Notes under the pieces: model-generated
Told to the model about the DNA's origin: nothing
The model's input: only the letters and a program-made list of their open reading frames with translations
Databases searched by the model: none
Shown: positions 17,407 through 47,800 of the stretch, in pieces
Numbering within the stretch: position 1 is the first letter of the stretch
How the letters are laid out: every line of letters starts with the position of its first letter
Assembly (NCBI GenBank): GCA_013115145.1
Contig: JAAPAO010000079.1
Span: 1 to 64,000 of the forward strand
Origin: Perkinsus chesapeaki ATCC PRA-425
Taxonomy: Eukaryota > Protista > Perkinsozoa
DNA length: 64,000 nucleotides
Reading direction: 5' to 3'
Program-made: the position numbers and the translations under genes

Positions 17407-20400
17407 CGACTCGTCGTCGTCGTCACTGTACTCGCTCGCTGACCGTTGACTCGCCACCAGCTCTGCCCACTTCAATCGATTGCTGTTAATTTGCTCAACA
17501 ACCTGAAAAAAGTAATATGGAACAGAAAGTTTTTATTTCAAAATAGAAGCTTTGGAAGAATCTTTCAAGAAAATAATACTTACCAGTTTCTGAGGTTCGA
17601 TCTAAACTGTTAACGAATGATCAGTTTACTGTTGACGTACGGACAGGACAGAAGCACAGATCGGAGTGGACGACAAAATTTTCTGAGATCCTTTGTTTTG
17701 CGATTTCATTTGGAAATCAGACTCGATGAAAATCGTTTCGAAGATCAAAATTTCTTTGTCGTACGATATTTTATTTCACAAAATGTTCAATACTTTATTG
17801 AACATTTTACGGCATTTCAAATCCCACGAAAAGTTAATTCTCAACAAGTGCAATTTATAAGTTTTCAATTTCACCAAGTGATGCAAGTTCCCTTGCTTCT
17901 TAATAGTGCCACTTTCCGAAAAATTTCCGAAAAAGTGGGAGAATTCAGTAAATTTGCCGAACAAATGAAAATCCACTTACATCTTTCATACGGCCGCTTG
18001 CCATCGGATTATATTGATCGACTCTCTTCTGGATGGCATGGTACAGCGGTAGAGTGCCTGACCGTCAGATATTTCACACCAAAGGTCCCCGGTTCAATTC
18101 CTCCTCACTCATTTCTAAGAATCCTAATTCCATTCCAGGAACGTCCAAAGTGGCAGAGTCGCAATAAAGGCTCACGGGGATGCCCATGGCCCACTCATCA
18201 TCTCCTTGAGAAACATATTCGGAAACTGACAAAAAAATTCCGGGAAAAATTTTCCCACCTTTTTCCCTGTCTCCGAAATGAAAGTTGTTGTGTAAAAAGC
18301 TCAACATAAAATGGTAGACCCGGAATCATAACATCAACCGCTCCACGAATTGCCACCACTCTCAAAAAATAACGAAAAAATATTTTATCAAAAACGCAAT
18401 ACTTCGTGAAATTAGCAATACGTAAAATTTTGGAGAAAAATATTTTCTATTGAATAGAAAATATTCAGAATGATAAGAATAGAATCTATTCTCACAAAAA
18501 TAAACCTCGCATCAACTCTGGATTTCTTCCTACATTCAAGATAGTTTATTTTTCGAAAATCTTGCAAATTTTCCGGAAATTTCCTAGAATTCTCCGAAAC
18601 TTACTGAGCCTTTCCACGCTAGAGTAATGAGAGTCCCAAGGCATCGCCGTGAATCCCATGTCAGCCGCTCGTATAACAGCTCGAAGTAAATGAATAGGAG
18701 CAGTACTAGGATCCTAAATCTTGCAATCTTGACAAATCTCACATTTCCTCAACGCACCTCAAGTTCCTCCACTCTTCTGAAATGGCTCGCTACATCTAAT
18801 GACATTATACAGTCGATAACTATTTTACGAAATCGGTCATTTTCGGACCTGAAAAATTGGGAAAAATTGCTGCGATTTTTTTGCACGCAGACGCCAAAGG
18901 CCATTTCACCGACAATTGCCTGTCTTCGAATTCCATTCTTCGCTCGTCCCATCCAAAAATAATAAAACGTTTTTGGCGGAATGAATCACTAGTAAGAAGA
19001 AGAAAATTCAACGGAAAAATTTCCGGAAATTTCCAGGGAAAAATTTATCTTACGTCGAAAGCCATTTAGTCGGATCACAGGTCGGATTCGCTTCGAGCGC
19101 TTCGAAGGTTGTCGCTGCGTGGAAATTCTGTAGTACCGATCTATCGTTGTATCTGAAAAGGTGATGAAGGCGGAGCGAAGCGACTTTTGTTTGTCATTTT
19201 TCTAAAACAATAAAAAATTCATGATATTCAGCGATTCAACTATCTCCGAAAGAATTAACACAATTCCAACTTACGTCACTGCAAGCTCATGTTCCGTCTC
19301 TATGAGGAAATCTGCCGTCCGAGCAAAGTGGCCAACCTAAACACAAATAGCTCAGTCAGTTAGTCCCTTCTTCTCCCATCGCAAAGGGCGTTGGTTCAAT
19401 CCCTTCTCCCGACATTTACATCTCCACAGAGGCAAGCCACGACGAACGCTGCCCATTCAAGAGGATGAATTTCAGCGATTCCCATCGACTCCAGTAGAAA
19501 GAACCTGAAACGCACGCCATTACCGCGCGCCACAAAATGAAGCAGTTTCAGGAGCCATGCTCAGCGAAATATGGAGATTTCCCCGTTCCAAAACATATAA
19601 ATTTCCTATGGTTCTTCGCATTGTTGCTTTTCCAGGATAATATTTTTTTCAGCGAATCACACATCGTAAAAACCAAAATTTCCAGAAAAAAATCCCGAAA
19701 ATTTCGGAAAATTTCCGTTAATCTCTGCTTACCCGTGGTGTGTCCTTTGTGCTGCATGTTTTGAATTATGAAATGGATTCGGCAAATAGAGTTGGTCGAT
19801 TAAAGTGAGAAATTTTTGAAGGCAAATTTGCCCTGATGCAGGAACACCAGACGAAGACGTCTTCGAAGTCTCTCCCACTGAAAACGAACACCGTCACTCG
19901 CCACATAATTGAGATAATTACTTGGCGCGTGAAGTCCGGGACCCATCAGCTGATTCATAATTGTGAATCCAACTAGTATAAATGCCGAGAGGCTTGTGGA
20001 CTGAAAAAAAGAATTTACCAAAAATAATTTTACAAAAATCTAAGAAAATCTCCATGGAAAAATGATCAAGGGAAAACATAACGGGAAACCGCTTCAGGCT
20101 CGCTGTGCGGAGACATAGAAATAATATTGTGTGAAAAATACTTGAAAAATAGGGTTAAGTCGGCTAGAGATATTCAAGAAACCGCCGTGATACTCGATCC
20201 GCGAGAAAACGTAGAACTGAGAATTTGGGGAAAATATCTGATACAAAAACAGAAATTTTCCAGAAATTTTCCCAAATTTACACTATTTTCGTGAAGAGTT
20301 TTTTCCAATTGATAAGCATCGAGAGAAAAATCCCGACCAACGGCCTTCAGTAAAGACATCGCAGAAGTTCCCAGCTGATCGAGGAATCCACTATCTGAAA

Positions 20401-20870
20401 AATAAACAAAGATGTCTGGACCGGGATTCGAACCTGCGTACCTGGTTTGACCGGATAAAACGGTCGCCTCAGTCGAACATAAGGCGGATTAGACGTGCTC
20501 GTCGGTTGAACTGGTGGAATTACTTCTCGTATCCATTCAAGAATCTAATGAGCGCGAAATCGATCACGTGATCGATTTGTGTCTCACTTGAGATTTCCGG
20601 AATTCTGCTCCGTTTTTTATCCAACCGAGTAACACTTCCTTCTGGAAATCCATTACAAACAGAGACTTTTGTGTTAGTCGCGACTGAACAGAAAAAATAG
20701 GAAAAAAACGGAATAATGAGGGGAAAATAATCTTAACAAAGGAAATCCGATAAATATTCCCTGGCAAAAATTCTTCAGAATTTCTTACCGTTTCTTGTGC
20801 ATGCTCAACATCTTCCAAAAGATATTTATTATCTTCGGGGTAACCAATCGATCCCTCTTGCCTGGCCCGC
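17335..20870 (-). CDS. Class I cyclic-nucleotide phosphodiesterase domain with non-canonical active-site residues
   Basis: NPFHNSKHAAQ; VACLCGD|VGHFARTADFLIETEHELAVT|YNDRSVLQNFHA; FRKIVIDCIMSLDVASHF; LRAVIRAADMGFTAMPW; EYVSQGDDEWAMGIPVSLYCD...MELGFLEM|STLPLY; VEQINSNRLKW. Confidence 0.88.
18075..18111 (+). pseudogene. tRNA-like variable-loop/B-box element, antisense in 51-nt intron 18058-18108
   Basis: cacaccaaAGGTCcccgGTTCAATTCCtcctcactcA-TTT (20-nt spacing; last bases exonic). Confidence 0.7.
19341..19414 (+). pseudogene. tRNA-sized element with A-box and B-box but no acceptor stem, filling 83-nt intron 19337-19419
   Basis: TAGCTCAGTCAG at 19348; GGTTCAATCC at 19393; ...gacA-TTT; spacing as in a 74-nt tRNA. 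Confidence 0.8.
20413..20441 (-). pseudogene. T-arm/B-box element at the donor of 47-nt intron 20395-20441
   Basis: CCAG|gtacgcagGTTCGAATCCcggtccagacA-tcttt; 21-nt spacing. Confidence 0.85.
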
Positions 20871-23800
20871 TCTAGTATTCTTTCGATATCAGTTAATCGC
20901 TAAAAGTGACAAAATTACAGCGGAGCGAAGCGAGAAATTTCCAAACAGATTTCGATAGTGAATTGCATACACTGGTTCCTCGTTTTCGCGCAACGCTGCT
21001 AGGCTAACGGCTTTTACAATCGAGTTGGTGGCGCCATATCGTATCGAGACTGGAATGCGAATACTCTCATATCTTGCTCATTTTACGACAACCATCATTG
21101 GGGTAGTCGTTGGCCTCTGCTTTCTGTTTTGCTGCGAGCTTGTTCAAATATCCGACTCTCGGTCGCAACATCCTACCCGTGAAGGTCTACGTGCAGGCGA
21201 TAACGACAACAAAGGGACCCTATTAGTCTACCAGCTAGCGGGTTGGGGAGGGTTCTTTGGTTAAGATCATTCGAAGGGATTTTTATTTCTAATGAAAATC
21301 GAATGCGAATCCTCGGGGTTCACGTGGCATACTGGTTGAGAAAGGACTTCGTCCGACGAAGCTGTGCGGTCGGAAGAACTCGAAGGAGAGCATCCAGGAA
21401 GCATCATCAAGCAAGGAGACCCTCATGGGGCAGAGAGCTGTTTCGTCTAGTTGGGAAGAGCAGTGCGCCAGTACTACTGGCCCAGTAGTGAAGTTGTCCC
21501 AGCCTCCCACTGTGACGGATGGGATGAATCGCGAGGGTTTAGGGAACGATACGTATTCCCGAGCTTATTCTTGCGTCTTGAAATGTGAGATCCCTAGTAA
21601 CTGCTGACAGTGAATTCAAATATTCAGAATTGTTGGAGATGTTTTCGTTGTTCAATATCCCATTGATGCAATCGTTGCAAGAGACTTGTTAACCCGTATG
21701 GTTGCGGAAGAGTTATACAAGGGATTTCCCTTTTGCTACTGTGGAGATCCTACCGACATCGTTAACGAAGTTGCCTTCTTGGTGCTACTCGTGAAGATCT
21801 AGGAGCAAACGAGAGCCACGATGAACATTCCAACGAAAAGATCCTATTAGTCTACCAGCAAGTGAAGTTAAGGCCGAGGCTCTGCATCACCCATGCCTTT
21901 AGACGCGGTCACGCTCACGCTTTAGCGGTCTCTGGCGCGTCTTAAAAAGAAGTGTGTGTAACTGGTTCCTGGAGGTACCAAAATCATGCAAGTGGCAGAG
22001 ACGATGCATATAATATAACCATCATCTCTGCCAGCAAGATATACATCATCTCATCAGATATATACTATCTATCAGCGAAGAGTACTGCCTCGAGAAGCGC
22101 ATTGCGCCTGCATACTATGCCGCGCATAGATAAACGGACCGGGGAGCATCTTCCTAGCCCGAAAAAAGGTTCCGCCAGAAAATGTTCCGTCAACTGTTCA
22201 GGAAGTAAGATTCGGTTAATAATGCAACCTTATACGGCCCGTTTTTCTTTATATAACCCTTTGGATATTCAGGTTCTCAACCAACCCTTAAGGAGCTAAA
22301 CGGATAACAAGAAGGAACTTTTGAGGAGCCCCTCGAGTCAACTCTGGCTTCAGAGTTTGAGAAGGATGTGCAGTAGCACATAGCCGGCAAGAAGTCTGAG
22401 CAGCACTTAGCTCCTAGAAGTCCTAAATTGGCAGTTACCGCGCGCAAACTCTCAAATTAGTTGAGTGGAAAAAACCATTTCCCTTGGAGATCAAGCTGTT
22501 GGGTTAAACAGAAGCGTGCGGGTGACACGAGTCATATTCGTAGTAAAGAAATCGCCACCCCCGGATTGCCCGATAATAACCCCGGAAAACATGAAAGAAT
22601 AACCCGAAACCCAGCTTGACAAGAAACCCGGCCCATCCAGGAACTAGACGAAGCTATGCTTGAGAATTGTCCGAACGAGCCCGCGCACCGTGGCAGTCTG
22701 CCACTGGCAGAGTCACGTTTTATGGGGCGTTTTTCGTGAGGGGCACCACAAATCCTTCCCAATTCGAGCCGTTCTCGGCAAAATGAGACGGCTTCCTCCG
22801 AAAAATGGGCAGAAAAGGAAAATTACTAATTTTAAATTAGAAGAGTATGCTTCCTGCGCAGAGGATAGCCGGCAAAAGTGCGTTGAAGTACTCTGCCAGG
22901 TAGAGTACAGAGTCTAGAGTCTGCCTCTAGAAGTGATTGAGGTATATAGCTGAGTTGGATTCGGAGGCTGTCACACCCAATTCGGCGAATCACGTTAGCC
23001 TTGCACTCGCGACGAATTCAGCGGCAAGATAAGGCTATGGAAAGCCATGATGTTTCCGTCCGGAGCGAGGAATGATAGTTCATAAAGACATATAAATCTA
23101 AGGCTTACCTTGAGTTCTCCTTCTATCTGTGAAGTCAGGGGACCATCAGAGTTAGAATCAAATGCATTTATTGTTGATTCAAGAACCTACGGAAATTAAT
23201 AAAAGAATCCCGGAAAATGTGGAAAAAGGGCACCGTAGAACTTGAGGAATTTCCCCAAAAAATGTGTTTTATAGGATCGTAGAACTTCGCAATATACATT
23301 TTGTGACAAAATGTTAAGTGCCTTCGTGAAGTTACGAAGACAAAATTTTCGTCTTATCGAACGGGTGATCAATTTGGGTGGCTTCGGAATATCTTCGCTT
23401 ACTCCAATAGCTCTCTGCGTAACCTCCATATTAAGATAGTTCTTTCTCCTATACATTTCAATCTGATATTTACCTGCCAAAGCCAAAGCATCCAAGAGCA
23501 GTTGCGCTATAATTGTGAACCTGAAAATGAAATGAAATTAGAAACGAAACGGCCCATGAAATTAGGGCCGAATTCGAAATGAGATGCAATGAAGCATAGA
23601 ATTATCTATGGCAAATGATAACTACGCGCTAAAATGTCGTTGGCCCAATATTTTAAACAAAACAGACATTCTACCTATATGTAGCTGCCATACCAATAAG
23701 GGTGACAGGCACTGTGCAAAAACCCAACGAAAAGCCACTAATGGACGCAAGATGCGTCCACCGGGGATCGAACATGGAGGAGAATTTTAAACTACTATTC

Positions 23801-26800
23801 GACATGAAGATTCGATTCTTACATACTAGTGCATGTTGCTATTATAAGGAGTAGCTTCCTCAGTGTTAACAAATATACAATAGATACATGTTGATAAAGC
23901 AGACAGGCCACGATGTAGGAAATATAATAAAAATTTCCGCCGCCGAGGATCGAACCCGAGACTTACAATGCTCGACTAACAGTGAATTCCACATCGATAC
24001 TGACGGTATTCGATTCCGGTATGTACGATATCGCCGTAACAACCGTATAGAGAGCTGCGGCAGGAATAACCAACCAAACTAGACGACAAAGCCTTATGGA
24101 AGAGTAAAAAGCCAGGTACCTAACAATTGGGAATAGTAAAGGAACATGCTTAGGAATGCATTTCATGTTTCTTCCGATCTAGGACATATCTTGAGAATAT
24201 GTTCCTCCCTTCGGAAGAAACCTTTTATTGCATTCCTGGACTAGCAGGACATTGCCAAAAATTTTCCAGAATTTCCCGAAGTCCATCCGCCACATCGCAG
24301 AGAAGGTTTAGTCGCAAAACGCAAACAACCTCATGAAGTTTATCGGTCACTGATAGACGTGTCTGATGCCGTCAATCGCTGATGAGTCTTCGTGGTGAAG
24401 ACGAAACACGTAATAGTGTGTGGCTACCACAGTGTGGTACACGTATGACCATGCCAAATATCGGATGAATCTATCCTGTGACTATACTGCAGTCCCTGGC
24501 GCATAGTGTTGACCAAAGCATCTGTTAACGCTCCGCTTCGGTAAGCGTCTAACAAGCTGGTGTGAACCACACCAGCTTGGCCCGCTGCGGTACTCCGCAA
24601 AGGCTGTAATTACTCCCAGTCTGCAAAGAAAACCAGCACTTTACGTCTGATGGCAAATTCTTTCTCCCATTGTCGAAGGACAATGTCCTTAGGATATGCA
24701 CACCATTCAACTGCGATATCATGCTGGCTTAATCCAATAAAAACACATCAGTCTGAGGCCATATAGGAGACGGATGTGGTACAGCAAGATGCTCTTGCCC
24801 ATCCCCGGTCCGGGGAAACCCAGCCGGGCATAAGGATACACCGCTGATCTTGGTACTTCAAGGAGGCAAAACAGGTGACAGGCTCGTGATTGGCGCCCGG
24901 GTCCTGCCATACACAGCCTGGAGCTTCTTCAACTCGCTTATTCTATGGGTGGATCGATTGAACAGCACGTAAGCTTACCTCAAGCCATGCTCTCCCATCC
25001 CACAGAGGTTGCTTCTTTTCCGCGCATCCCTGCTAAGTGTCGAGCCTATGGCTCGAGCACTGGGACTAGTAAGCGCCCTCGCCGAACTTGTCAGCAAGGT
25101 CTTCGGCAAACCACTCCATGGTGTGCAGCCATCGGATGCTTAGATCATCAGATGCTCAGACCATAGCCACATATCGGCTTTCACCAATCCTGGTTCGCTT
25201 TATGAAGTCATCTGGGCGTAACCCTGCGCTTGCAGAGTGCAGAGTCACGATGGCACTTGTCATAGCTATGCTAATCGAAGACGTGCCTTCTGCCCGCTCC
25301 CATGCACAACTGAATTTCGCAGTGCAGAGTGCACGTGTGCCCAATGGTCAACGGAAAAATAAGTGAAATGGAGCCAAGGTCATTCGGACGAAACTCCAGC
25401 TCATAACAATTTATGAAATCTACAAAAATCTCCATAGGAACTGCCCTGTTCACCACGCGCCCTCACAACAGAGCCGGGAGTTGAAGTGATACTGTTGACG
25501 CGTGGGTTGCCCGCAATGGTAGACGGTGGCCGTGATAAAAACAACTCTGCCTTGTCGATAACAGTCGACGTGCTGAGTTCAGAGATAGCAGTGCAAGCCG
25601 ATAACAAAGGAACCATTGAATCTCCCGAAGGGCCAGTGAATCTCCTGAGCTTGCGGTAAACCGATCCGATCTTTCCCAGTCTTTCCGCACCGTGGCCATA
25701 TGCTATAGACTTACTCTACAGCCTATAGTGATACGCGGTGTTAAAGACTTCTCTAGAGAGATGGAAAGTGCCGATTCCTTAAGCCAAGAATCTCACGAGT
25801 TGCAAACTTGTACCACTTTAATTCAAGAAAGAGCCTTTTGAAAGACAGGACTATTGCGACAGGGAGGGCGACACTGGCCCACGCCAATAGCACATGTCGC
25901 ACTTCAAAATTCTCACAAATTATCCCGTATTTTTCCCGTGCCTCCCCCTTACGTAATTAGCCCAGTTTGAAGCACAGCAAAGTCCGCTCCTCTCCACTGG
26001 GACACTTCAGTGCCGTAGGCATCTTCAATACTCACATCTGAAGAATAAGGAAGAATGTAAAAAACCCATCGAGCAAGACGACTCCGCATTAAAACTAATA
26101 ATACACAGCAATAATGCCACGCAATATCAATCGGAAACATATACGAAGTAGTTTGTACCTCTTTCATTAAATTAATTTTCTGAGTGGTTCTCGGGAAATT
26201 TACACTTATCCAATTTCCCATTTTTTTCCGGCTTTTCCAGGAAAATCCTGGGAAAAACGGGAAATTTTTTCCTCCCCAATAGCATTACTGCATAATCGAG
26301 ATGCCCGATAAAGGTCTCCTGCAAATATTTCCAATAAAACAACAATCCCAGTCCAAATTAAAACACCAACTTCTGCCCGACCTCGCAGTACCCACGGGAA
26401 AAACCGCAAGGCTATACATAAGATACCTGAACCAGGAATCGAACCCGCGATCATATAAATAGAGGTCCTCGATTAGAGGAATCTTCGCTAGCTGAGAAAA
26501 TATCTTAGCTTCTGCTAGTATTTAGCATTTTACCTGTCATAGTTGTCATACACCTTACAACGAATTTTCTGTGAAAAAATGTCCTCCTTTCGATATTTTT
26601 TCCACGTAATTTCCTAAACTCTCCGTCATTGAAAATCCCAAATTTCGTAGAATTCCACAGTAAGAAGTTTTCCCTGAAAGATTTCCTCCACTTAGTCCCA
26701 TAATATTACCCATTGCGATTGTGATCAGCCACGCTATGTTATAAAAGATATTTGCACTCGTTGCCCATCGAGCGATCAATGGAGTAGACGTAAAACTCCA

Positions 26801-28240
26801 TCCTAGACAAAGCTTCCACACAGCAAATCTAAAAAAAAAGGAATCTTAGCTTGAACCATGCACGATATAATAGAGGTCAACTACATGATAACTCCCACAC
26901 CCATTAAAGTGAAGTTCTTCTGCGTCTTCCCGTCCACACCACTCACATAGACTCGCTCGACGGCCGGAACCGAGAATCGTGGGAACAGCAAACAGAAACC
27001 TCTGAGAAGAGAAATACTCCCAAAAATTACCCCATAATAATTTTCCACTTGCTGAAGCTTGTGTTCTCTGGAAAGTGAGAAGGTCAAATTCCTGCTTTTA
27101 TACGTTTGAAGTTCCCCGAAATTCTGGTAAAAATTTCGTTTTTTTCGTCCCGTATTATTACCGTTTGATAAAAACTGCATCCCATTTTGCCAGTTTTTCC
27201 TTTTTATACTGGATTTGATCGATCGGTCCCAAAACCGCCTCAAAATCAGTCCCGGGATCTTCACTAGACCAGCAGCTACTATCATCATCAAACGACTCCG
27301 CATAACCCTCATCTCCTTCATCTCCGTCACGCGCCGCATAATTAGCCTCTTCCTCGCTCACTGGAGCCGGGCCGCTATCGCTCCCATCGCTAACTGAACC
27401 GACTCCCACGTAATACTCATCCCCATAATAACCCTCATAAAATCTATCGTAATGATGAGTCGGCGCTGACAACGCTCGGGGAGCCGGTGGCATCTGCACG
27501 AATATGAAATATAAAAAATCAAAACTATATTTTCCAAATTTTGGCAAGGAAATAAATAATCATAATTTCTAGTAGACATGCGATACAAAGGGGACCGATA
27601 TTTCTACTTTGGGAGTCGATCAAGCCACTTATCATGAAAAACAAAGAAGACCATTTTTCTTGAAGAAGCACGAACGTAAGGACAAATCTCCGCATAAAAG
27701 GCGGATCGTATTCTACTTGGTTTTTGAGACAGTTAGGAAAACACGAAAACCAAAGGAAACAAGAGCAAATTTCACGCAGAAATTTTCGCCGAATTTTCTC
27801 GTATGGTTCCCTTTGGGAAAGGACCGGAAATACGAACATGAAAATTTTAGACGATTAACTTTTCCACATTATCGCCCATTCATTACATCTCCTTTGCTCG
27901 CCTCCCGAGTAGGTCGAGAATCATTATGAATTTTTTCATCGCTCCCTTCTTTAACACGTCTCCGACGCCACATGGAGGAAAGATTTATGTCGTGGTTTGA
28001 TGCTCCTAATTAAGACATATTTTGTCTATAGTATCTTGGGCAACTAAAGTATTGAAGGATGACACTCCCAAACAATGAGAAGCCCGCACTGAAAATGATA
28101 TTTTTACGCCGAAAAAATAGTTTTGTATGTTACGTTCAGCGTTGCGCCGATCAAACCAAAATATGACACACGACGTGGTCATCACTAATGCAGTTTTTTT
28201 GACCAGATTAAACCCGAATGATACTAAATACAACAGCAAT
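20870..28240 (-). CDS. Multi-exon, multi-transmembrane region, probably the N-terminal part of the PDE gene (may be more than one gene)
   Basis: Hydrophobic exons (RLVWLVIPAAALYTVVTAISY; IAWHYCCVLLVLM; NIAWLITIAMGNIMGL; PLCIACLLEIMIIYFL) on the same strand; alveolate PDEs commonly carry N-terminal TM helices. Confidence 0.5.
23753..23775 (-). pseudogene. B-box element, tRNA-Gly-like 3' end
   Basis: GTTCGATCCccggtggacgcA-tctt; 21-nt spacing. Confidence 0.75.
23935..23966 (-). pseudogene. B-box element at a donor
   Basis: CATT|gtaagtctcggGTTCGATCCtcggcggcggaA-aTTTTT; 21-nt spacing. Confidence 0.8.
24357..24411 (+). ncRNA. Type III hammerhead ribozyme
   Basis: ACGT-GTC-TGAT-gccgtca-ATCG-CTGATGA-GTCTTC-gtggt-GAAGAC-GAAA-CACGT: full core, GUC cleavage triplet, stems I/II/III all pair. 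Confidence 0.88.
26424..26452 (-). pseudogene. B-box element in an intron
   Basis: gatcgcggGTTCGATTCCtggttcaggtA-tctt; 21-nt spacing. Confidence 0.75.
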
Positions 28241-35685: not shown

Positions 35686-38600
35686 AATGATGATGATGAG
35701 CGATAGTGATGATTACAGTAAAGTTTCAAGCCACATGTGGAAGAATGGTAACTGAATTGGAAGATGACTGAGATTCAGCCGAACATCAAGTAACAAGTGC
35801 CAGTATATAGGCAATAAAGAGACACAATATTGCCTGGCGGATGCTCACTTCGTCTCTGTGGAGTGATTTTTCGAATCTAAAAGCTCGGCTCAAGTCCACA
35901 TTTCATCAGTTATATAACGCGAAGTGCAATCTCTCGCAACCGTAAAACTTGGTAATCTCTCTCACAGGTGGACTAGCAAGCTCCAGCGAGTCCTTATTTA
36001 TTTTCCCAACACTCAAGGGTGATGCCCTCCAAGATGAGCCACCTCAAGGATGCGCGCTCGGCCATGATCTATCCGCTGTACGGTGGAGGAAGGGTGTGAC
36101 TTGCGGTTGTTGTGGTGAAAATATAAACCAAGAAGGGACAATGTGAGCACACAATTCATACCGCATTTCTCTCTCATCGTCAACCCCAGATACTCTTGTA
36201 AGGCGTGTAAGTACTACTTTTGCAATGCTTGTATGGAAAGTGCGAAGAAATTGGGTAAGTCTCATTTCTTCAAGGTTTGCTGCTGTACCTCATCGCACAA
36301 ATCTGACCTCCTCAAAATGCATCGCGGTGGTCTTAAGGCCCGATTTCGTATACACGGTGGGTACCTGTATCGGGCATGCTGTTCAGATCGCGCGGCTTTC
36401 GAATCCTTACGCTGTCCAAAGCGCCATGAGTTGAAAGAGTTTGTGGCCGATCAGCCAGGATATGTTTGCAACGTATGTGATTCGGAAGCCTTGAAGAAAG
36501 GCGCTCAAATGTAAGGCTTGCGCACTCTGAAGATTTTGGATATGCTGCTCACGATCAGTTTGGGTTGCCGCAAATGCGACTTCGATATGTGCGGAAAATG
36601 CGTTGAAGTTGGATGTAAAGCAAGTGAGTTGAGCTTTTGTGTATCTTGCTCGCTTGGAGCTAAGATCCTTTCAGTTTCTGTCTCGAGCAACTTGGTCGAT
36701 CACCCAACACCAGCTGATTTCAATCGGCTTCACTGTCCTAACCGCCACACCCTGAAGAGGTTCAAGATTCTCAACGGCGCTCACTCCTGCGGATGCTGCG
36801 ATCGATCTAGCCTACCTCGAGGCACCGAAGCGTGAGAATCCCGGCCTCGCTCGACCCTTTCCAATCTGTTCTTCATAGGTTCTCCTGTGATAAATGCAGT
36901 TATGAGCTTTGTTTCGATTGCGCCTGTAAGTGCGTGTTGGCAACGCTACGACTCTCCGCAGCTGTTGTCAGACAGCGATAGAGTGCCCGAATATCTTTTC
37001 GATTCTCGTAATATAACTCCCTTCAAAAATTTAGTCCGCTTGCCTTTGTAATACATTTCCTGCTCAATCTATCTTGTATGTTTAATATCGTTTCGACAGT
37101 GTTCGGCCTGCAGGTAAGTCACTGATAGCATTCAAATCAGGAACAGTGTCGAGCGCCGGGAAAGAACTATTAGACAATGTAAGTGCGTAAGGTTTGACCC
37201 TTGATTCCAAATACGAGCAGATAATAATTATATCATTGTTATATATCATTAACTAGTCATGAAACGGTTATAAGATTTTGTCAAGTGAATCTCAACTATG
37301 ATGTGCGTAACATATCCGAAAATGAGCCCTAAACTGGTTCCCGTTGTGGAGTAATGATATTATTTCAAAATTTTTGAAATTTATTTGGAGGACTGTATAA
37401 TTTTTCTAGGGTGTAGATAACTTTCAGATTTCTGGCATACTGGAGGACAAGCAAGCGTTGATGGAGCACTGTGCGAGATGGTTTAAAACTTATGATGTCA
37501 ACAAGGACGGTAGCTCTTTTTATAATCGATCACGTGATCGATTACGACTTGTCAGGATATCTTAGCTTCGTTGAGCTGACCGACCTATGTGGGCAGCTTC
37601 TCGCCGATCTGGACGTACCAGGCATGGACAAGTGTACAGTGCAGCAAGTAAGATATTGGAGAATCTTTAATCGATTGCGCGATCGATTTGTTTTCGATAT
37701 ATTATTCTTCAGTACATGAAGAAGTACGACGTTGATGGTGACGAGAGGCTTACACCAAAGGAGTTTCACGAGTTGTTTAATCGTATATTATTGAAGGCAA
37801 AGTGAGGGTCTCGGGTTCGATCCCGGCATATGTCGTTTTAATATTTAGAGCCATTCACACACCATTCGCGTTAAAGCGACGAGGACTTCTCGGGAGAGCA
37901 AAAGGTGAGAAAGCGTCATTCGGATGAATTTGGTCTGTTCACTAGCAGTGTCGAAATTATAAAATATGTTGCGCCGCCCGCAGCGGGTACATGTAGCTGC
38001 CGACATAATTATAACAACCCAGGCCACGTCGTCCAGAGCCGCCTCCGATCGGCACCGCATCACACCCTGCAGAATTGAACATCAGCCTACGATAGGACGC
38101 TCCCCTCCGCAGTCTGGAGGGAGTGGGTTCGCTCGAAAACCGGAAATTCACAACGGGGAGAATTAGCTCGTGAGATGATCAATAATATCAAGCTGGAATT
38201 CCGAAAGAACTCTGTTAAGGAAATTCCTGCTGGGCAGAACGATTTGTGTATAGAGGAATGCGTTAATGCAGGAGTCTACCTACAGTGAGACGTTGTCAGG
38301 CATATCTCACGCGAATCATCATAATCATACAAACGGGTGACCGCTGGATATCGTATTTTTCTTACGAGTTAGCGCCACCTTAACTTTTCCCGGCTGCATA
38401 TATCAATGTGTTACAGGAACTGACTCAGTTCAACTGAGATGTATAATAAGCTAGGTTGCTCGACAGGTCTGCCGTCGGGGAGATACACTTTGAGGGAAGA
38501 CCTCGGGCACGGATCGTTCGGTGCGGCACAGAAAGTGATTGATAAATTGACAAAGGAAGAGAGGGTGAGAATGACACGGTAGACTGACGCAATTGCGAGC

Positions 38601-44088: not shown

Positions 44089-46129
44089 TCCGACAAACTC
44101 TCGCTTTAGATTATATGGCACCCTCAGAAGGTGCTTTTTAGTAAAAGCTTTGTTAGTTGTAAACCTAGCCCAGTGGGCTAAGCCCACTTACCAACTGCGA
44201 AGGTATACAACGTTCATCCTGAATGGCTCATCCATTCATCCATCAGGTTTTGCGTTCTGAGTATCACAGAGACTTTTAGTATCTCCTACGTGTTTCTCCC
44301 ACCCGAAAAAATGCATGCACTGTCTTTCGGCTCCTTATTCACTATCACAGTTGTAGGGTACAACAGTGGTGGTTGCCCTGCAGCAGGGCCCCTTGTCAGC
44401 TGCGTTCGATCTAGGCATACCACAATGCAATAGTTGTAAGAGTAAGAGTAAGAAGAGATACTCAGTATACTTAAAGAGTAACGTAGCACACTGTCTTAGA
44501 ATAGCGTACAGCTCAAAGATATTACGTCACAAAAGGAGACATCTAACACAACGGGACACAATAGATTGATATCCGAGACCCTGCTGACAGTGTCAGCCTG
44601 ACACTGTGACAGATCCGACGTCTGTCCGACAGTGTCTTACGAAGCCACACGTGACAGGTGGCCTAATACCCGGGTTACCAAGTCTCGGCTGGTACTACTG
44701 GGCCTAGTAGTGAACGAATCCTGTGATGAAAATTAATAAATGGGTCACTAAAGCTGAAATTTTCGCCTGAAAATAGCTCGCAGTTCGAGTCAAACTGTTT
44801 GATCCGAGTAGAAATATTAAAGATGCGGTGAATGAAACGCTGAATCTTACCACGCATTTTTAACATCAGGACCTGATGTTGAAAAGGTAATGATCAAGTT
44901 CGCATTTCGTCCAAGCGGGGGAATTTGGTCAATTTCGCCGTTAGGATCTTCGACTCGAAGACTTCGATCGATGAAATCGAACTTCGCAAGTTCGATTTCA
45001 CGTTCGGGCTGCCAATGTTCGCCAGTCTCTCATGGTACATAATGTACCGTACATTCAATTTCGCACTAATAGGAAATTCAATTTAATAGTTAGGATGCTT
45101 AACTTCGGAAGGCTGATTTCGTCAGAGTCGACAGTAACCCCAAACAATTGGATGGAAACCACGCACTGCGAACACGATAAACATTTCAAACACTGACAGT
45201 GTTTAAAGCAGTATTACATTCCTGATTGATGCTGAGCATGGTGAGGCTGGGATTCCCAGCCTGGAAGTAACAGACTGTTACTAACAGTTGCTCAGCAACA
45301 AGCCTGGTTGCTCCCAGTGTAACTCAGGGAACCTAGGCCCTAACTGGGTTTTTCTTTTCCGAAAACGAGCGGAAGCTTTCGCCGCGAAAGTTTCGCGAAG
45401 TTTTCGAAAAATTCCGAGAGATTTCAGCGGCACTACACCATTTCAAGATCTAATTAGTAAAAGCCAAGATCGAATTAATATAGCCCAGAACAAATTAGTA
45501 AGAACCCAGAACAAATTGATATAACCCAGAACAAATTTTGTCTTGAGCACTCCTTGAAGGAGCGCTCAAGGGGAAAGATAAGGTTTGCGGTAGGATTCTT
45601 ACCGCTGATGCACCGGAGATTGAAGATCTCCGAAGGAAAAGGTCGCAGCCCTAATTCAAAATATGATCATATAATTTCGCCAAAAAAGGATAGTGGTTCT
45701 CTTGCAGCAAAAGTCTTGCTGATGCCGTATTGAATGATTGATACAGTATGTAGAATGTCCGGCGAGGTAGGATAGCCCGGCTGTCACAGCCGGCGGCTGT
45801 CTGCCACAGGTTTTGCCGTTTTGGGTACCTTGTTTTACTGAAGTTAATTCTATTAGGTAGTGCTTCCTCGGTCGAAGATAAAATTCAATAGTGTCATAAG
45901 TGATGGAGAGGCGAAGACGAGTGGCGACGATGGAGGTAGTGAACACGGTTGCTAAATCATTAAGTGGGAGTGCCGACCTATTGATATTTAAATTTTGCAA
46001 TGAATATTGTAAACTTATAATTATGAATCCTGCGGTATTCACGGAGGGTTGAAGCTTGGGCCATCTCCTGAACACCCTTTGGGGACTCCTCAATGAGGAG
46101 AATCTCCCCGGGAGATTATTCGCAAATGG

Positions 46130-47130
46130 AGTCTGACATCATGGCTTTTAGTACTCTAGCAATCGTCACGAATGCCTATGGTTGAATTGGATACCCTCTT
46201 TGTCGTTTACGCGGTTGCTGTACTGAAAACCTGTTCCACATTACTTCCAACTGCGGTGGGTTATGTAATGCTGAATACTTGGACCGTCAAAATCGTGATG
46301 CTTGCTTGATTTACAGAAAATGCTGGTCGTTACTGCATTTGAGCGTAGGTGGTGGATTATCAGACCCTCGTGGGTTTAAAATGAATGTGGCTCTTAATAT
46401 TCAATATGGAATATTGGGATCAAGCTGATTAGGCTAATCAGATTAGCTGTTTATCGAAAGATATAGGGATCGGCCCCAGAAGTTATAACGTATATAGACT
46501 CTATAACTTCGCTATAACCTCTATATTATAGAGGAAGGCTGATTCAAGCATCCTTGGCACAGCAACAGTTATGAGGGGTGCGCCGACCGACTGCCGTCCA
46601 CAAACAATGGTCTGGAATCTATGAACAGTCAGTTGAAGTCTTCAACTTGACGATATCGGGAGACAACCTTCGACGTTCTGTGCGACGGTCGCGCTGCGAT
46701 CTGATGAGATGGGACCATGAGACTGTTGGAGTCCATAATGGGTAATGCCCAGTGAACATTGCTCAGGTTAATGGAATTGTGGAAAGTGAAACGCCTCACT
46801 ATCGTATATATTCACGCTCGTAGACTACTTCGATGGCGATGACAAGTAGGCGGACCACTGCAGGCTACTGATATTAGCCTCGCCAGCCTGATGACACCAG
46901 GAGATCGTCTTGATCCTCTAACTATTTTTTGATAAGGTCAGCGCACCGATATCAGAATGTCACTGATGATGAAAAGGCAGGTTTCCAATGTTGGTGAGAG
47001 AAACATAGCAGGAAGTTTCTGCCAGAAACGCGTTTTGCCAAACACATTTTCTGGTCCATCGTATACCCGTGTGACGTTGACAGAGCGAATGACATTCTCC
47101 AAACGTCGTAGTCCGAGGTAGCGGGTAGTG
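46130..47130 (+). mobile_element. Decayed Mutator-like (MULE) transposase fragment
   Basis: SYEGCADRLPSTNNGLESMNSQLK (46567-46638) resembles the MULE EG...PSTNN.LE motif; stops nearby; possible frameshifted SWIM remnant (FCKHI) near 47035 and a basic tail. Confidence 0.6.
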
Positions 47131-47214
47131 TGACATGCGGCAATGTTTGTAGGCCTCAGGCAGAAGGATATGATTCGCCCTTGAGTTCCGTGACACCTGA
47201 GAAAACCTTCGGCC

Positions 47215-47800
47215 GAGGCCTGATCAAGTGGAAGGCTTCCACTTGATCAGGCCTCCAAGCTCATTGAGCTTATTGAGCTCAATGAGCTCCATCATGAAAC
47301 CTCCATGTAATCCTGCCAGTCATTTGGTATTGTGAGCCATGTCTTTCGACTCCGACAGTTGTGTTGCGTCTATATGATATAGACGCAACAATAATAAATT
47401 GTTATGATATAGACTATATCATAACAATTTATTATTATTAATAAACTTTATACGAAGTCGTTGATCACACTAAACGCGGTCGGATCTGAAACCGGCGCGG
47501 ACCACTATGAAGGTTCCGTTCAAACCTACTAAACTCGTTGGCATTGTTATTTATCGCATATTCGTGTACGGTACACGCCGTGTGCTACACGGTGTACCCA
47601 AATATAGGCGCGTGGCTGGTAACGCTGGTAGCTCTCAAGGTGGCAATCTCAACCTATTAGTTAACTAGGCGGTCTAGTTATTAGTCTAGGCCAATAGTTT
47701 ATACTACACTGATAAAGCGATCTCCTAGGGCCCCTAGGCTAGGGGGACGTAGTTAGAAATTGTACCGGAACCGTTCCGGTACAACCGTTCCGGCGGAACG
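47215..47800. repeat. Cluster of perfect palindromes/hairpins
   Basis: 20-bp arms at 47215-47255; 13-bp arms at ~47258; 12-bp and 23-bp arms at ~47365-47436; 12-bp arms at ~47759; mostly 1-nt spacers. Confidence 0.92.

Follow-up and report, generated by a model that had tools for sequence, protein, structure and literature searches.

Perkinsus chesapeaki carries a complete type III hammerhead motif of 55 nt at 24357-24411 on the + strand of the window, the stretch of 64,000 nucleotides analysed here, where it lies antisense within an intron of a minus-strand gene for a membrane protein. The intronic DNA around the motif is most likely a non-coding insertion, about 1.5-1.8 kb long and specific to the lineage, and about an even chance is given to the explanation that fits best, namely that the hammerhead came in on this insertion as a passenger and would be what is left of a retroelement that bore it.

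Read directly from the sequence, every nucleotide of the hammerhead core is in place. The core boxes CUGAUGA (C3 to A9) and GAAA (G12 to A15.1) occupy 24379-24385 and 24403-24406, in the plain reading as in the Rfam alignment, and three helices surround them, helices I and II being capped by loops and helix III being open. Stem III pairs ACGUGU (24357-24362) with ACACGU (24406-24411) over 6 bp, the A15.1-U16.1 pair (U24362-A24406) counted in; stem I pairs UGAU (24364-24367) with AUCG (24375-24378) over 4 bp, opening on a U.G pair and closing in the 7-nt loop GCCGUCA; and stem II pairs GUCUUC (24386-24391) with GAAGAC (24397-24402) over 6 bp, G10.1-C11.1 first, around the 5-nt loop GUGGU. The invariant core of RF00008 (C3, U4, G5, A6, N7, G8, A9, G12, A13, A14, the A15.1-U16.1 pair and H17) is thus present at 13 of 13 positions, together with the G10.1-C11.1 pair, and the compact loops resemble those of natural type III motifs. 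From the hammerhead consensus, that is, the GUC triplet and the A15.1-U16.1 pair, self-cleavage is predicted between C17 (24363) and U1.1 (24364). An earlier note on this DNA had described a complete type III hammerhead with CUGAUGA, GAAA and GUC, stems of 6, 6 and 4 bp, a 7-nt loop and cleavage after C24363, and it was correct in each of these details.

The Infernal check against the Rfam hammerhead models, which the same note had proposed, also bears the motif out, as RF00008 (Hammerhead_3) aligns full length, over model positions 1-54, to 24356-24412(+) with 33.6 bits in cmscan, the E-value being 9.3e-6 on 271 nt and 3.1e-4 on 9 kb. This is 15 bits short of the gathering score of 48.5 bits, a curated threshold that is conservative for a short motif, and the hammerhead is for this reason missing from a default Rfam scan of the window. 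Pattern, Infernal and descriptor scans revealed no second or degenerate hammerhead within 4 kb or elsewhere in the window. In the 9 kb scanned with Rfam, no other ribozyme class was found near the hammerhead and no other credible family at E up to 10.

The motif is very probably genuine, a chance match being unlikely within one genome, a judgement that is less safe across many gigabases. A look-alike produced by random matching of the short consensus in a moderately GC-rich intron, by way of very many windows, is regarded as decidedly unlikely, though it is kept in play because the scale of the scan is large. For the hammerhead family alone, the Infernal chance rate of about 4e-12 per nt (scaled from the 9-kb scan) corresponds to 4e-4 to 7e-4 chance matches per genome (44-90 Mb, both strands), which argues against chance, but the expectation for the same family rises to about 0.1 when roughly 250,000 windows, each of 64 kb, are considered, and counting all 4,227 Rfam families as tests gives about 1.5-3 for a genome of 45-90 Mb. 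The shortfall from the gathering score also weighs on the side of chance, whereas the full complement of invariant positions, the G10.1-C11.1 pair and the compact loops of natural type weigh on the other. An independent descriptor, made up of the core boxes, U16.1, H17 and three stems, gave the hammerhead at 24357-24411 as its sole match in the window with stems of at least 4/4/4 bp. Applied to 40 Mb of first-order Markov random sequence, the descriptor returned 13 matches at 3/3/3 bp or better and one at 4/4/4 or better, but none at 4/6/6 or better; the stems of the hammerhead hold 16 pairs, compared with at most 14 among the random matches. An analytic estimate for 4/6/6 bp or better, with loops of up to 60 nt, comes to about 0.03 per 180 Mb.

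Thermodynamically the hammerhead is unremarkable, its fold being computed at -12.0 kcal/mol against a minimum free energy (MFE) of -15.0 kcal/mol, with a z-score of -0.78. Loops 1 and 2 are both present, and in the MFE structure loop 1 pairs with CUGAUG, the resulting hairpin displacing stem I, than which it is 3 kcal/mol more stable. That the hammerhead fold is not the MFE structure is a further point for a chance match, and the competing hairpin, together with the short stem I and its opening U.G pair, is counted against a retroelement relic as well. Should the + strand be transcribed, folding of its RNA would set the CUGAUGA/GAAA core among three helices, and self-cleavage after C24363 would follow, with a 2',3'-cyclic phosphate and a 5'-OH as the new ends; release of a unit-length circular RNA would be impossible because there is a single hammerhead. 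We infer that the hammerhead is competent to cleave and that it lacks a present function. No RNA contig lies over it in two runs whose type was guessed as RNA, although their contig sets are tiny and cannot show absence.

The strand of the host gene is given by a contig of run X6 (type guessed as RNA) that joins 26289 to 26037 and skips 251 nt ending CT..AC on the + strand. As these ends are GT..AG on the minus strand, the gene lies on the minus strand, with an upstream intron at 26038-26288. The intron holding the hammerhead is placed at 24120-25952 on the minus strand (1,833 nt), with GTAAGG at 25952 as its donor and TTGTTAG, ending at 24120, as its acceptor, because this choice of donor and acceptor gives one open frame: exons 26454-26289, 26037-25953 and 24119-23967, once spliced, form a single uninterrupted frame with hydrophobic, membrane-like segments. 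One such segment belongs to the downstream exon (23967-24119, minus strand), which is conserved in a diverged copy of the gene, and the boundaries of the intron coincide with the points at which similarity to that copy resumes. The intron is far longer than its neighbours, one of which is the 251-nt upstream intron. The earlier note had thus been right to place the hammerhead antisense in an intron of a minus-strand gene, as the spliced X6 contig and the continuity of the frame both indicate. It had, however, put the acceptor at about 24348, and this position has to be given up, since the AG at 24351-24350, read in the frame set by the upstream exons (one of whose junctions is backed by the RNA-guessed contig), meets a stop codon three codons on and has no counterpart in the diverged copy. 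The real acceptor, ending at 24120, is 237 nt from the hammerhead. The 67-aa exon ORF of the host gene has no match in the protein collection; for the PP2C exon of the window, the best protein match is 66% identical.

The diverged copy comes from run X2, a 2022 sample, which yielded both a near-identical contig, with 2 differences over 22300-26810, and a second, diverged version of the gene. On a 1,071-nt contig this second version matches 23943-24133, 25944-26042 and 26284-26450 of the window and skips 24134-25943, a non-coding, single-copy stretch whose absence is marked by a direct joint from 24133 to 25944. It differs from the host exons by roughly 10-15%, with many of the differences lying a multiple of three apart, and its depth in X2 is about 115 as opposed to 72 for the near-identical contig. 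Run X2 seems to contain a second related genome or a very divergent haplotype, because the diverged copy is present there and no such copy is found among the contigs of run X1. Along the part of the window that it spans (23943-27495, X2 only), the introns of the diverged copy are of differing length.

Between the matches to the outer exons, the diverged copy has only 407 nt, which have to accommodate both the other intron and the 99-nt middle exon. The intron that it has at this place can therefore measure at most about 300 nt, and the host intron holds at least 1.5 kb of extra sequence. Having no counterpart in a diverged copy of the same gene, this stretch is not deeply conserved. Its composition is distinct, with a GC content of 50-60% over most of about 24750-25650 compared with roughly 34-48% just outside the intron. 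No coding remnant was detected in it, neither the ORFs nor 20 stop-to-stop segments of the intron giving a Pfam match, and searches of the intron for internal direct repeats and terminal inverted repeats returned only short pairs at chance level. The window holds no further copy of the 3.5 kb around the hammerhead. Over 24291-25919, contig depth in X1 and X2 at 80% likeness or more amounts to a single source-like contig, the one exception being a short extra X1 match near 24653-24676. It follows that at 80% likeness or above the hammerhead and its surroundings have no other copy in either assembly, and hence that the hammerhead was not recently copied from a family that is still present. The absence of a reverse transcriptase and of a second copy from the window, which the earlier note had reported, is in line with the Pfam, copy and ribozyme scans, all of them empty, and the copy-number check of the flanks that it had suggested returned no other contig at 80% or more over the hammerhead in X1 or X2.

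A short motif of AAATTTTCC/GGAAAATTT type occurs at seven sites between 19695 and 27806 of the window, in both orientations and in the non-coding DNA around the host gene (examples are at 20250, 24245, 25903 and 27777). Two of these copies, at about 24245-24275 and 25903-25943, lie on either side of the extra stretch, where they may point to the original intron sequence.

For an insertion of this kind, a hammerhead-bearing retroelement is the best available source, and the inserted DNA could be a solo LTR, a fragment, or the cDNA of a retrozyme-like RNA. The host would have tolerated it because the ribozyme lies on the opposite strand and leaves the pre-mRNA, which is its complement, uncut. 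Antisense orientation is also what is expected of mobile-element insertions tolerated in introns. Retroelements bear most hammerheads of eukaryotic genomes, solo LTRs being the remains most often left, and in the retrozyme families of plants a solo LTR with one hammerhead is a common sight (PMC4918200, PMC6155905). It is from this rule for eukaryotic hammerheads, combined with the lineage-specific extra DNA and the antisense orientation, that a retroelement origin is argued.

The hallmarks of a mobile element, in contrast, were looked for and not found, which counts against a retroelement relic and favours a chance match. Target-site duplications of 4-8 bp around candidate ends, with or without TG..CA, are no more frequent than chance would have it: 8-bp matches number six where about 6 are expected, and TG..CA pairs with a duplication of at least 4 bp numbered four against about six expected. 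The 7-bp repeat TTTCCCG at 24272-24278 and 25932-25938 is suggestive only, with p about 0.15. Around the insertion there are no terminal repeats and no usable polypurine tract (PPT) adjacent to a boundary. A primer-binding site (PBS) at a plausible boundary was not matched within 4 mismatches, a weak negative that holds for the iMet queries used, and the same weakness applies to a spliced-leader-like motif, of which none was found. Membership in a repeated family finds no support either, no similar LTR-like copies being present in the window or, at 80% or more, in X1 or X2 (besides the match at 24653-24676).

Among known systems, the hammerhead most resembles that of the solo LTRs of plant LTR retrozymes (Cervera, Urbina and de la Pena 2016, PMC4918200), in which, as here, one canonical type III hammerhead, its core being CUGAUGAGUC...GACGAAAC, stands in non-coding DNA with no partner and is predicted to cleave after a GUC triplet. 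Its workings would be those of the plant-type type III motif, with membership in the family putative. The two differ in that the host here is not a plant and in that neither a 4-bp target-site duplication nor TG..CA ends, PBS/PPT boxes or a copy family can be demonstrated for the Perkinsus stretch, which at 1.5 kb or more is also much longer than the 330-350 bp of a plant retrozyme LTR. A working retrozyme needs two hammerheads or tandem copies. Of the three readings that the earlier note had offered, the solo relic of a mobile element fits best, while the working retrozyme finds no support, the locus having one hammerhead and no tandem copies.

That a 55-nt motif should stay intact in an old, unique and neutrally decaying relic is somewhat unexpected, and this leaves room for selection or chance. 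Selection would be at work if the host had retained the hammerhead as a functional ribozyme, one that processes the 5' or 3' end of a + strand intron transcript or limits the length of the antisense RNA. The flawless motif points in this direction, as it exceeds what neutral decay predicts for a surrounding 1.6 kb with no relative at 80% or more in two assemblies, but the stretch is missing from the diverged copy of the same gene, and the two RNA-guessed runs, tiny as their sets are and unable to show absence, gave no contig on it. The 897 nt downstream of the cleavage site fold more stably than shuffled sequences, with z of about -3.5 to -3.9, a second point in favour of function that is offset by the lack of strand specificity (z is -6.0 on the minus strand) and by the 4 of 35 control windows whose structure is about as strong or stronger (z of -3.2 or below). 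On balance, host-retained function is considered unlikely. Going further, the motif might be an active type III hammerhead of an undescribed retroelement lineage in an alveolate parasite, kept intact because intronic + strand RNA cleaves itself, perhaps so that an antisense non-coding RNA acting on the host membrane-protein gene is generated or terminated; this is thought distinctly improbable.

The insertion might alternatively have arisen when a circular RNA replicon, viroid-like or otherwise, or a non-LTR retrozyme-like circle was copied into cDNA and integrated, a capture that happened once and involved no LTR element. Such a capture would account for one hammerhead in a non-coding, GC-rich and structured stretch of about 1.6 kb that lacks LTR hallmarks, and type III hammerheads are typical of RNAs of this sort (PMC7761336). 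The stretch, however, contains no second ribozyme of either polarity, and the exact pattern of core and stem II is absent from viral contigs, being met only in two unrelated, GC-rich and apparently bacterial metagenome contigs (L001 and L002); the lack of strand specificity in the structure signal also counts against a captured RNA, which is accordingly held to be very unlikely. The excess structure downstream was considered as evidence of a viroid-like RNA and rejected, since it is neither strand-specific nor unique in the window. It reflects hairpin content at the level of DNA, given that the minus strand is the stronger of the two and control windows are comparable. By far the most structured part of the window is 45001-47700, where 897-nt windows reach z of -5.3 and -8.2 against shuffles.

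The retroelement relic favoured here can be set beside three further groups of hammerheads. The amniote hammerheads in RECK and C10orf118 (PMC3088659, PMC6155905) are similarly lone, sit in a spliceosomal intron of a protein-coding gene and are thought to descend from retroelements. They are, however, of type I and show conservation across classes, and their sense orientation lets them cut the pre-mRNA of the host, whereas the Perkinsus hammerhead belongs to type III, lies antisense and is missing from the diverged copy of its host gene. The type III hammerheads of Arabidopsis thaliana (PMC7761336) are likewise isolated canonical motifs of nuclear DNA, one lying antisense to an ORF, but they form two copies within 5 kb, are transcribed and cleave in vivo, while the single copy described here is known from sequence alone. 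Penelope-like elements and the non-LTR retrozymes of animals share with it that their hammerheads are carried by retroelements, a carrier that in Perkinsus is putative. Theirs are type I motifs, often minimal, with a weak helix III, and act as dimers in tandem repeats; the hammerhead here, in contrast, has a stable 6-bp helix III and type III topology, with no tandem copy and no reverse transcriptase.

Type III hammerheads in eukaryotic nuclear genomes have been described mainly from flowering plants, where they occur in retrozymes. For algae and oomycetes, reviews list only putative cases of type III hammerheads (PMC5680766). In a literature search, no paper linked hammerheads with Perkinsus or with the retrotransposons of dinoflagellates, and the retroelements of alveolates drew a blank as well. 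An active copy, if verified, would widen the host range of the association between type III hammerheads and retroelements, and would provide a clean single-copy locus for asking if a hammerhead that lies antisense in an intron is transcribed and cleaved. Taken alone, the locus is one unexpressed-looking motif with no demonstrable surrounding element.

Some smaller features of the host gene and its introns deserve mention. Two inverted structures occur in the same intron as the hammerhead, a palindrome with perfect 12-bp arms and a 3-nt loop (CAAGCTGGTGTG/CACACCAGCTTG) at 24553-24579 and, at 24167-24221, a perfect hairpin of 11 bp around a 33-nt loop; both are unlike in sequence to the recurrent ATCGATCACGTGATCGAT palindrome found at 37523-37544 and 20556-20579. 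The host intron that starts at 23966 on the minus strand opens with GTAAGT and continues directly into sequence like the 3' half of a tRNA, with a GGTTCGATCC T-arm (23930-23966 of the window). Further pieces resembling a T-arm lie at 26425-26450 (minus strand) and 23750-23775, and these T-arm-like pieces draw extra contigs in both DNA runs.
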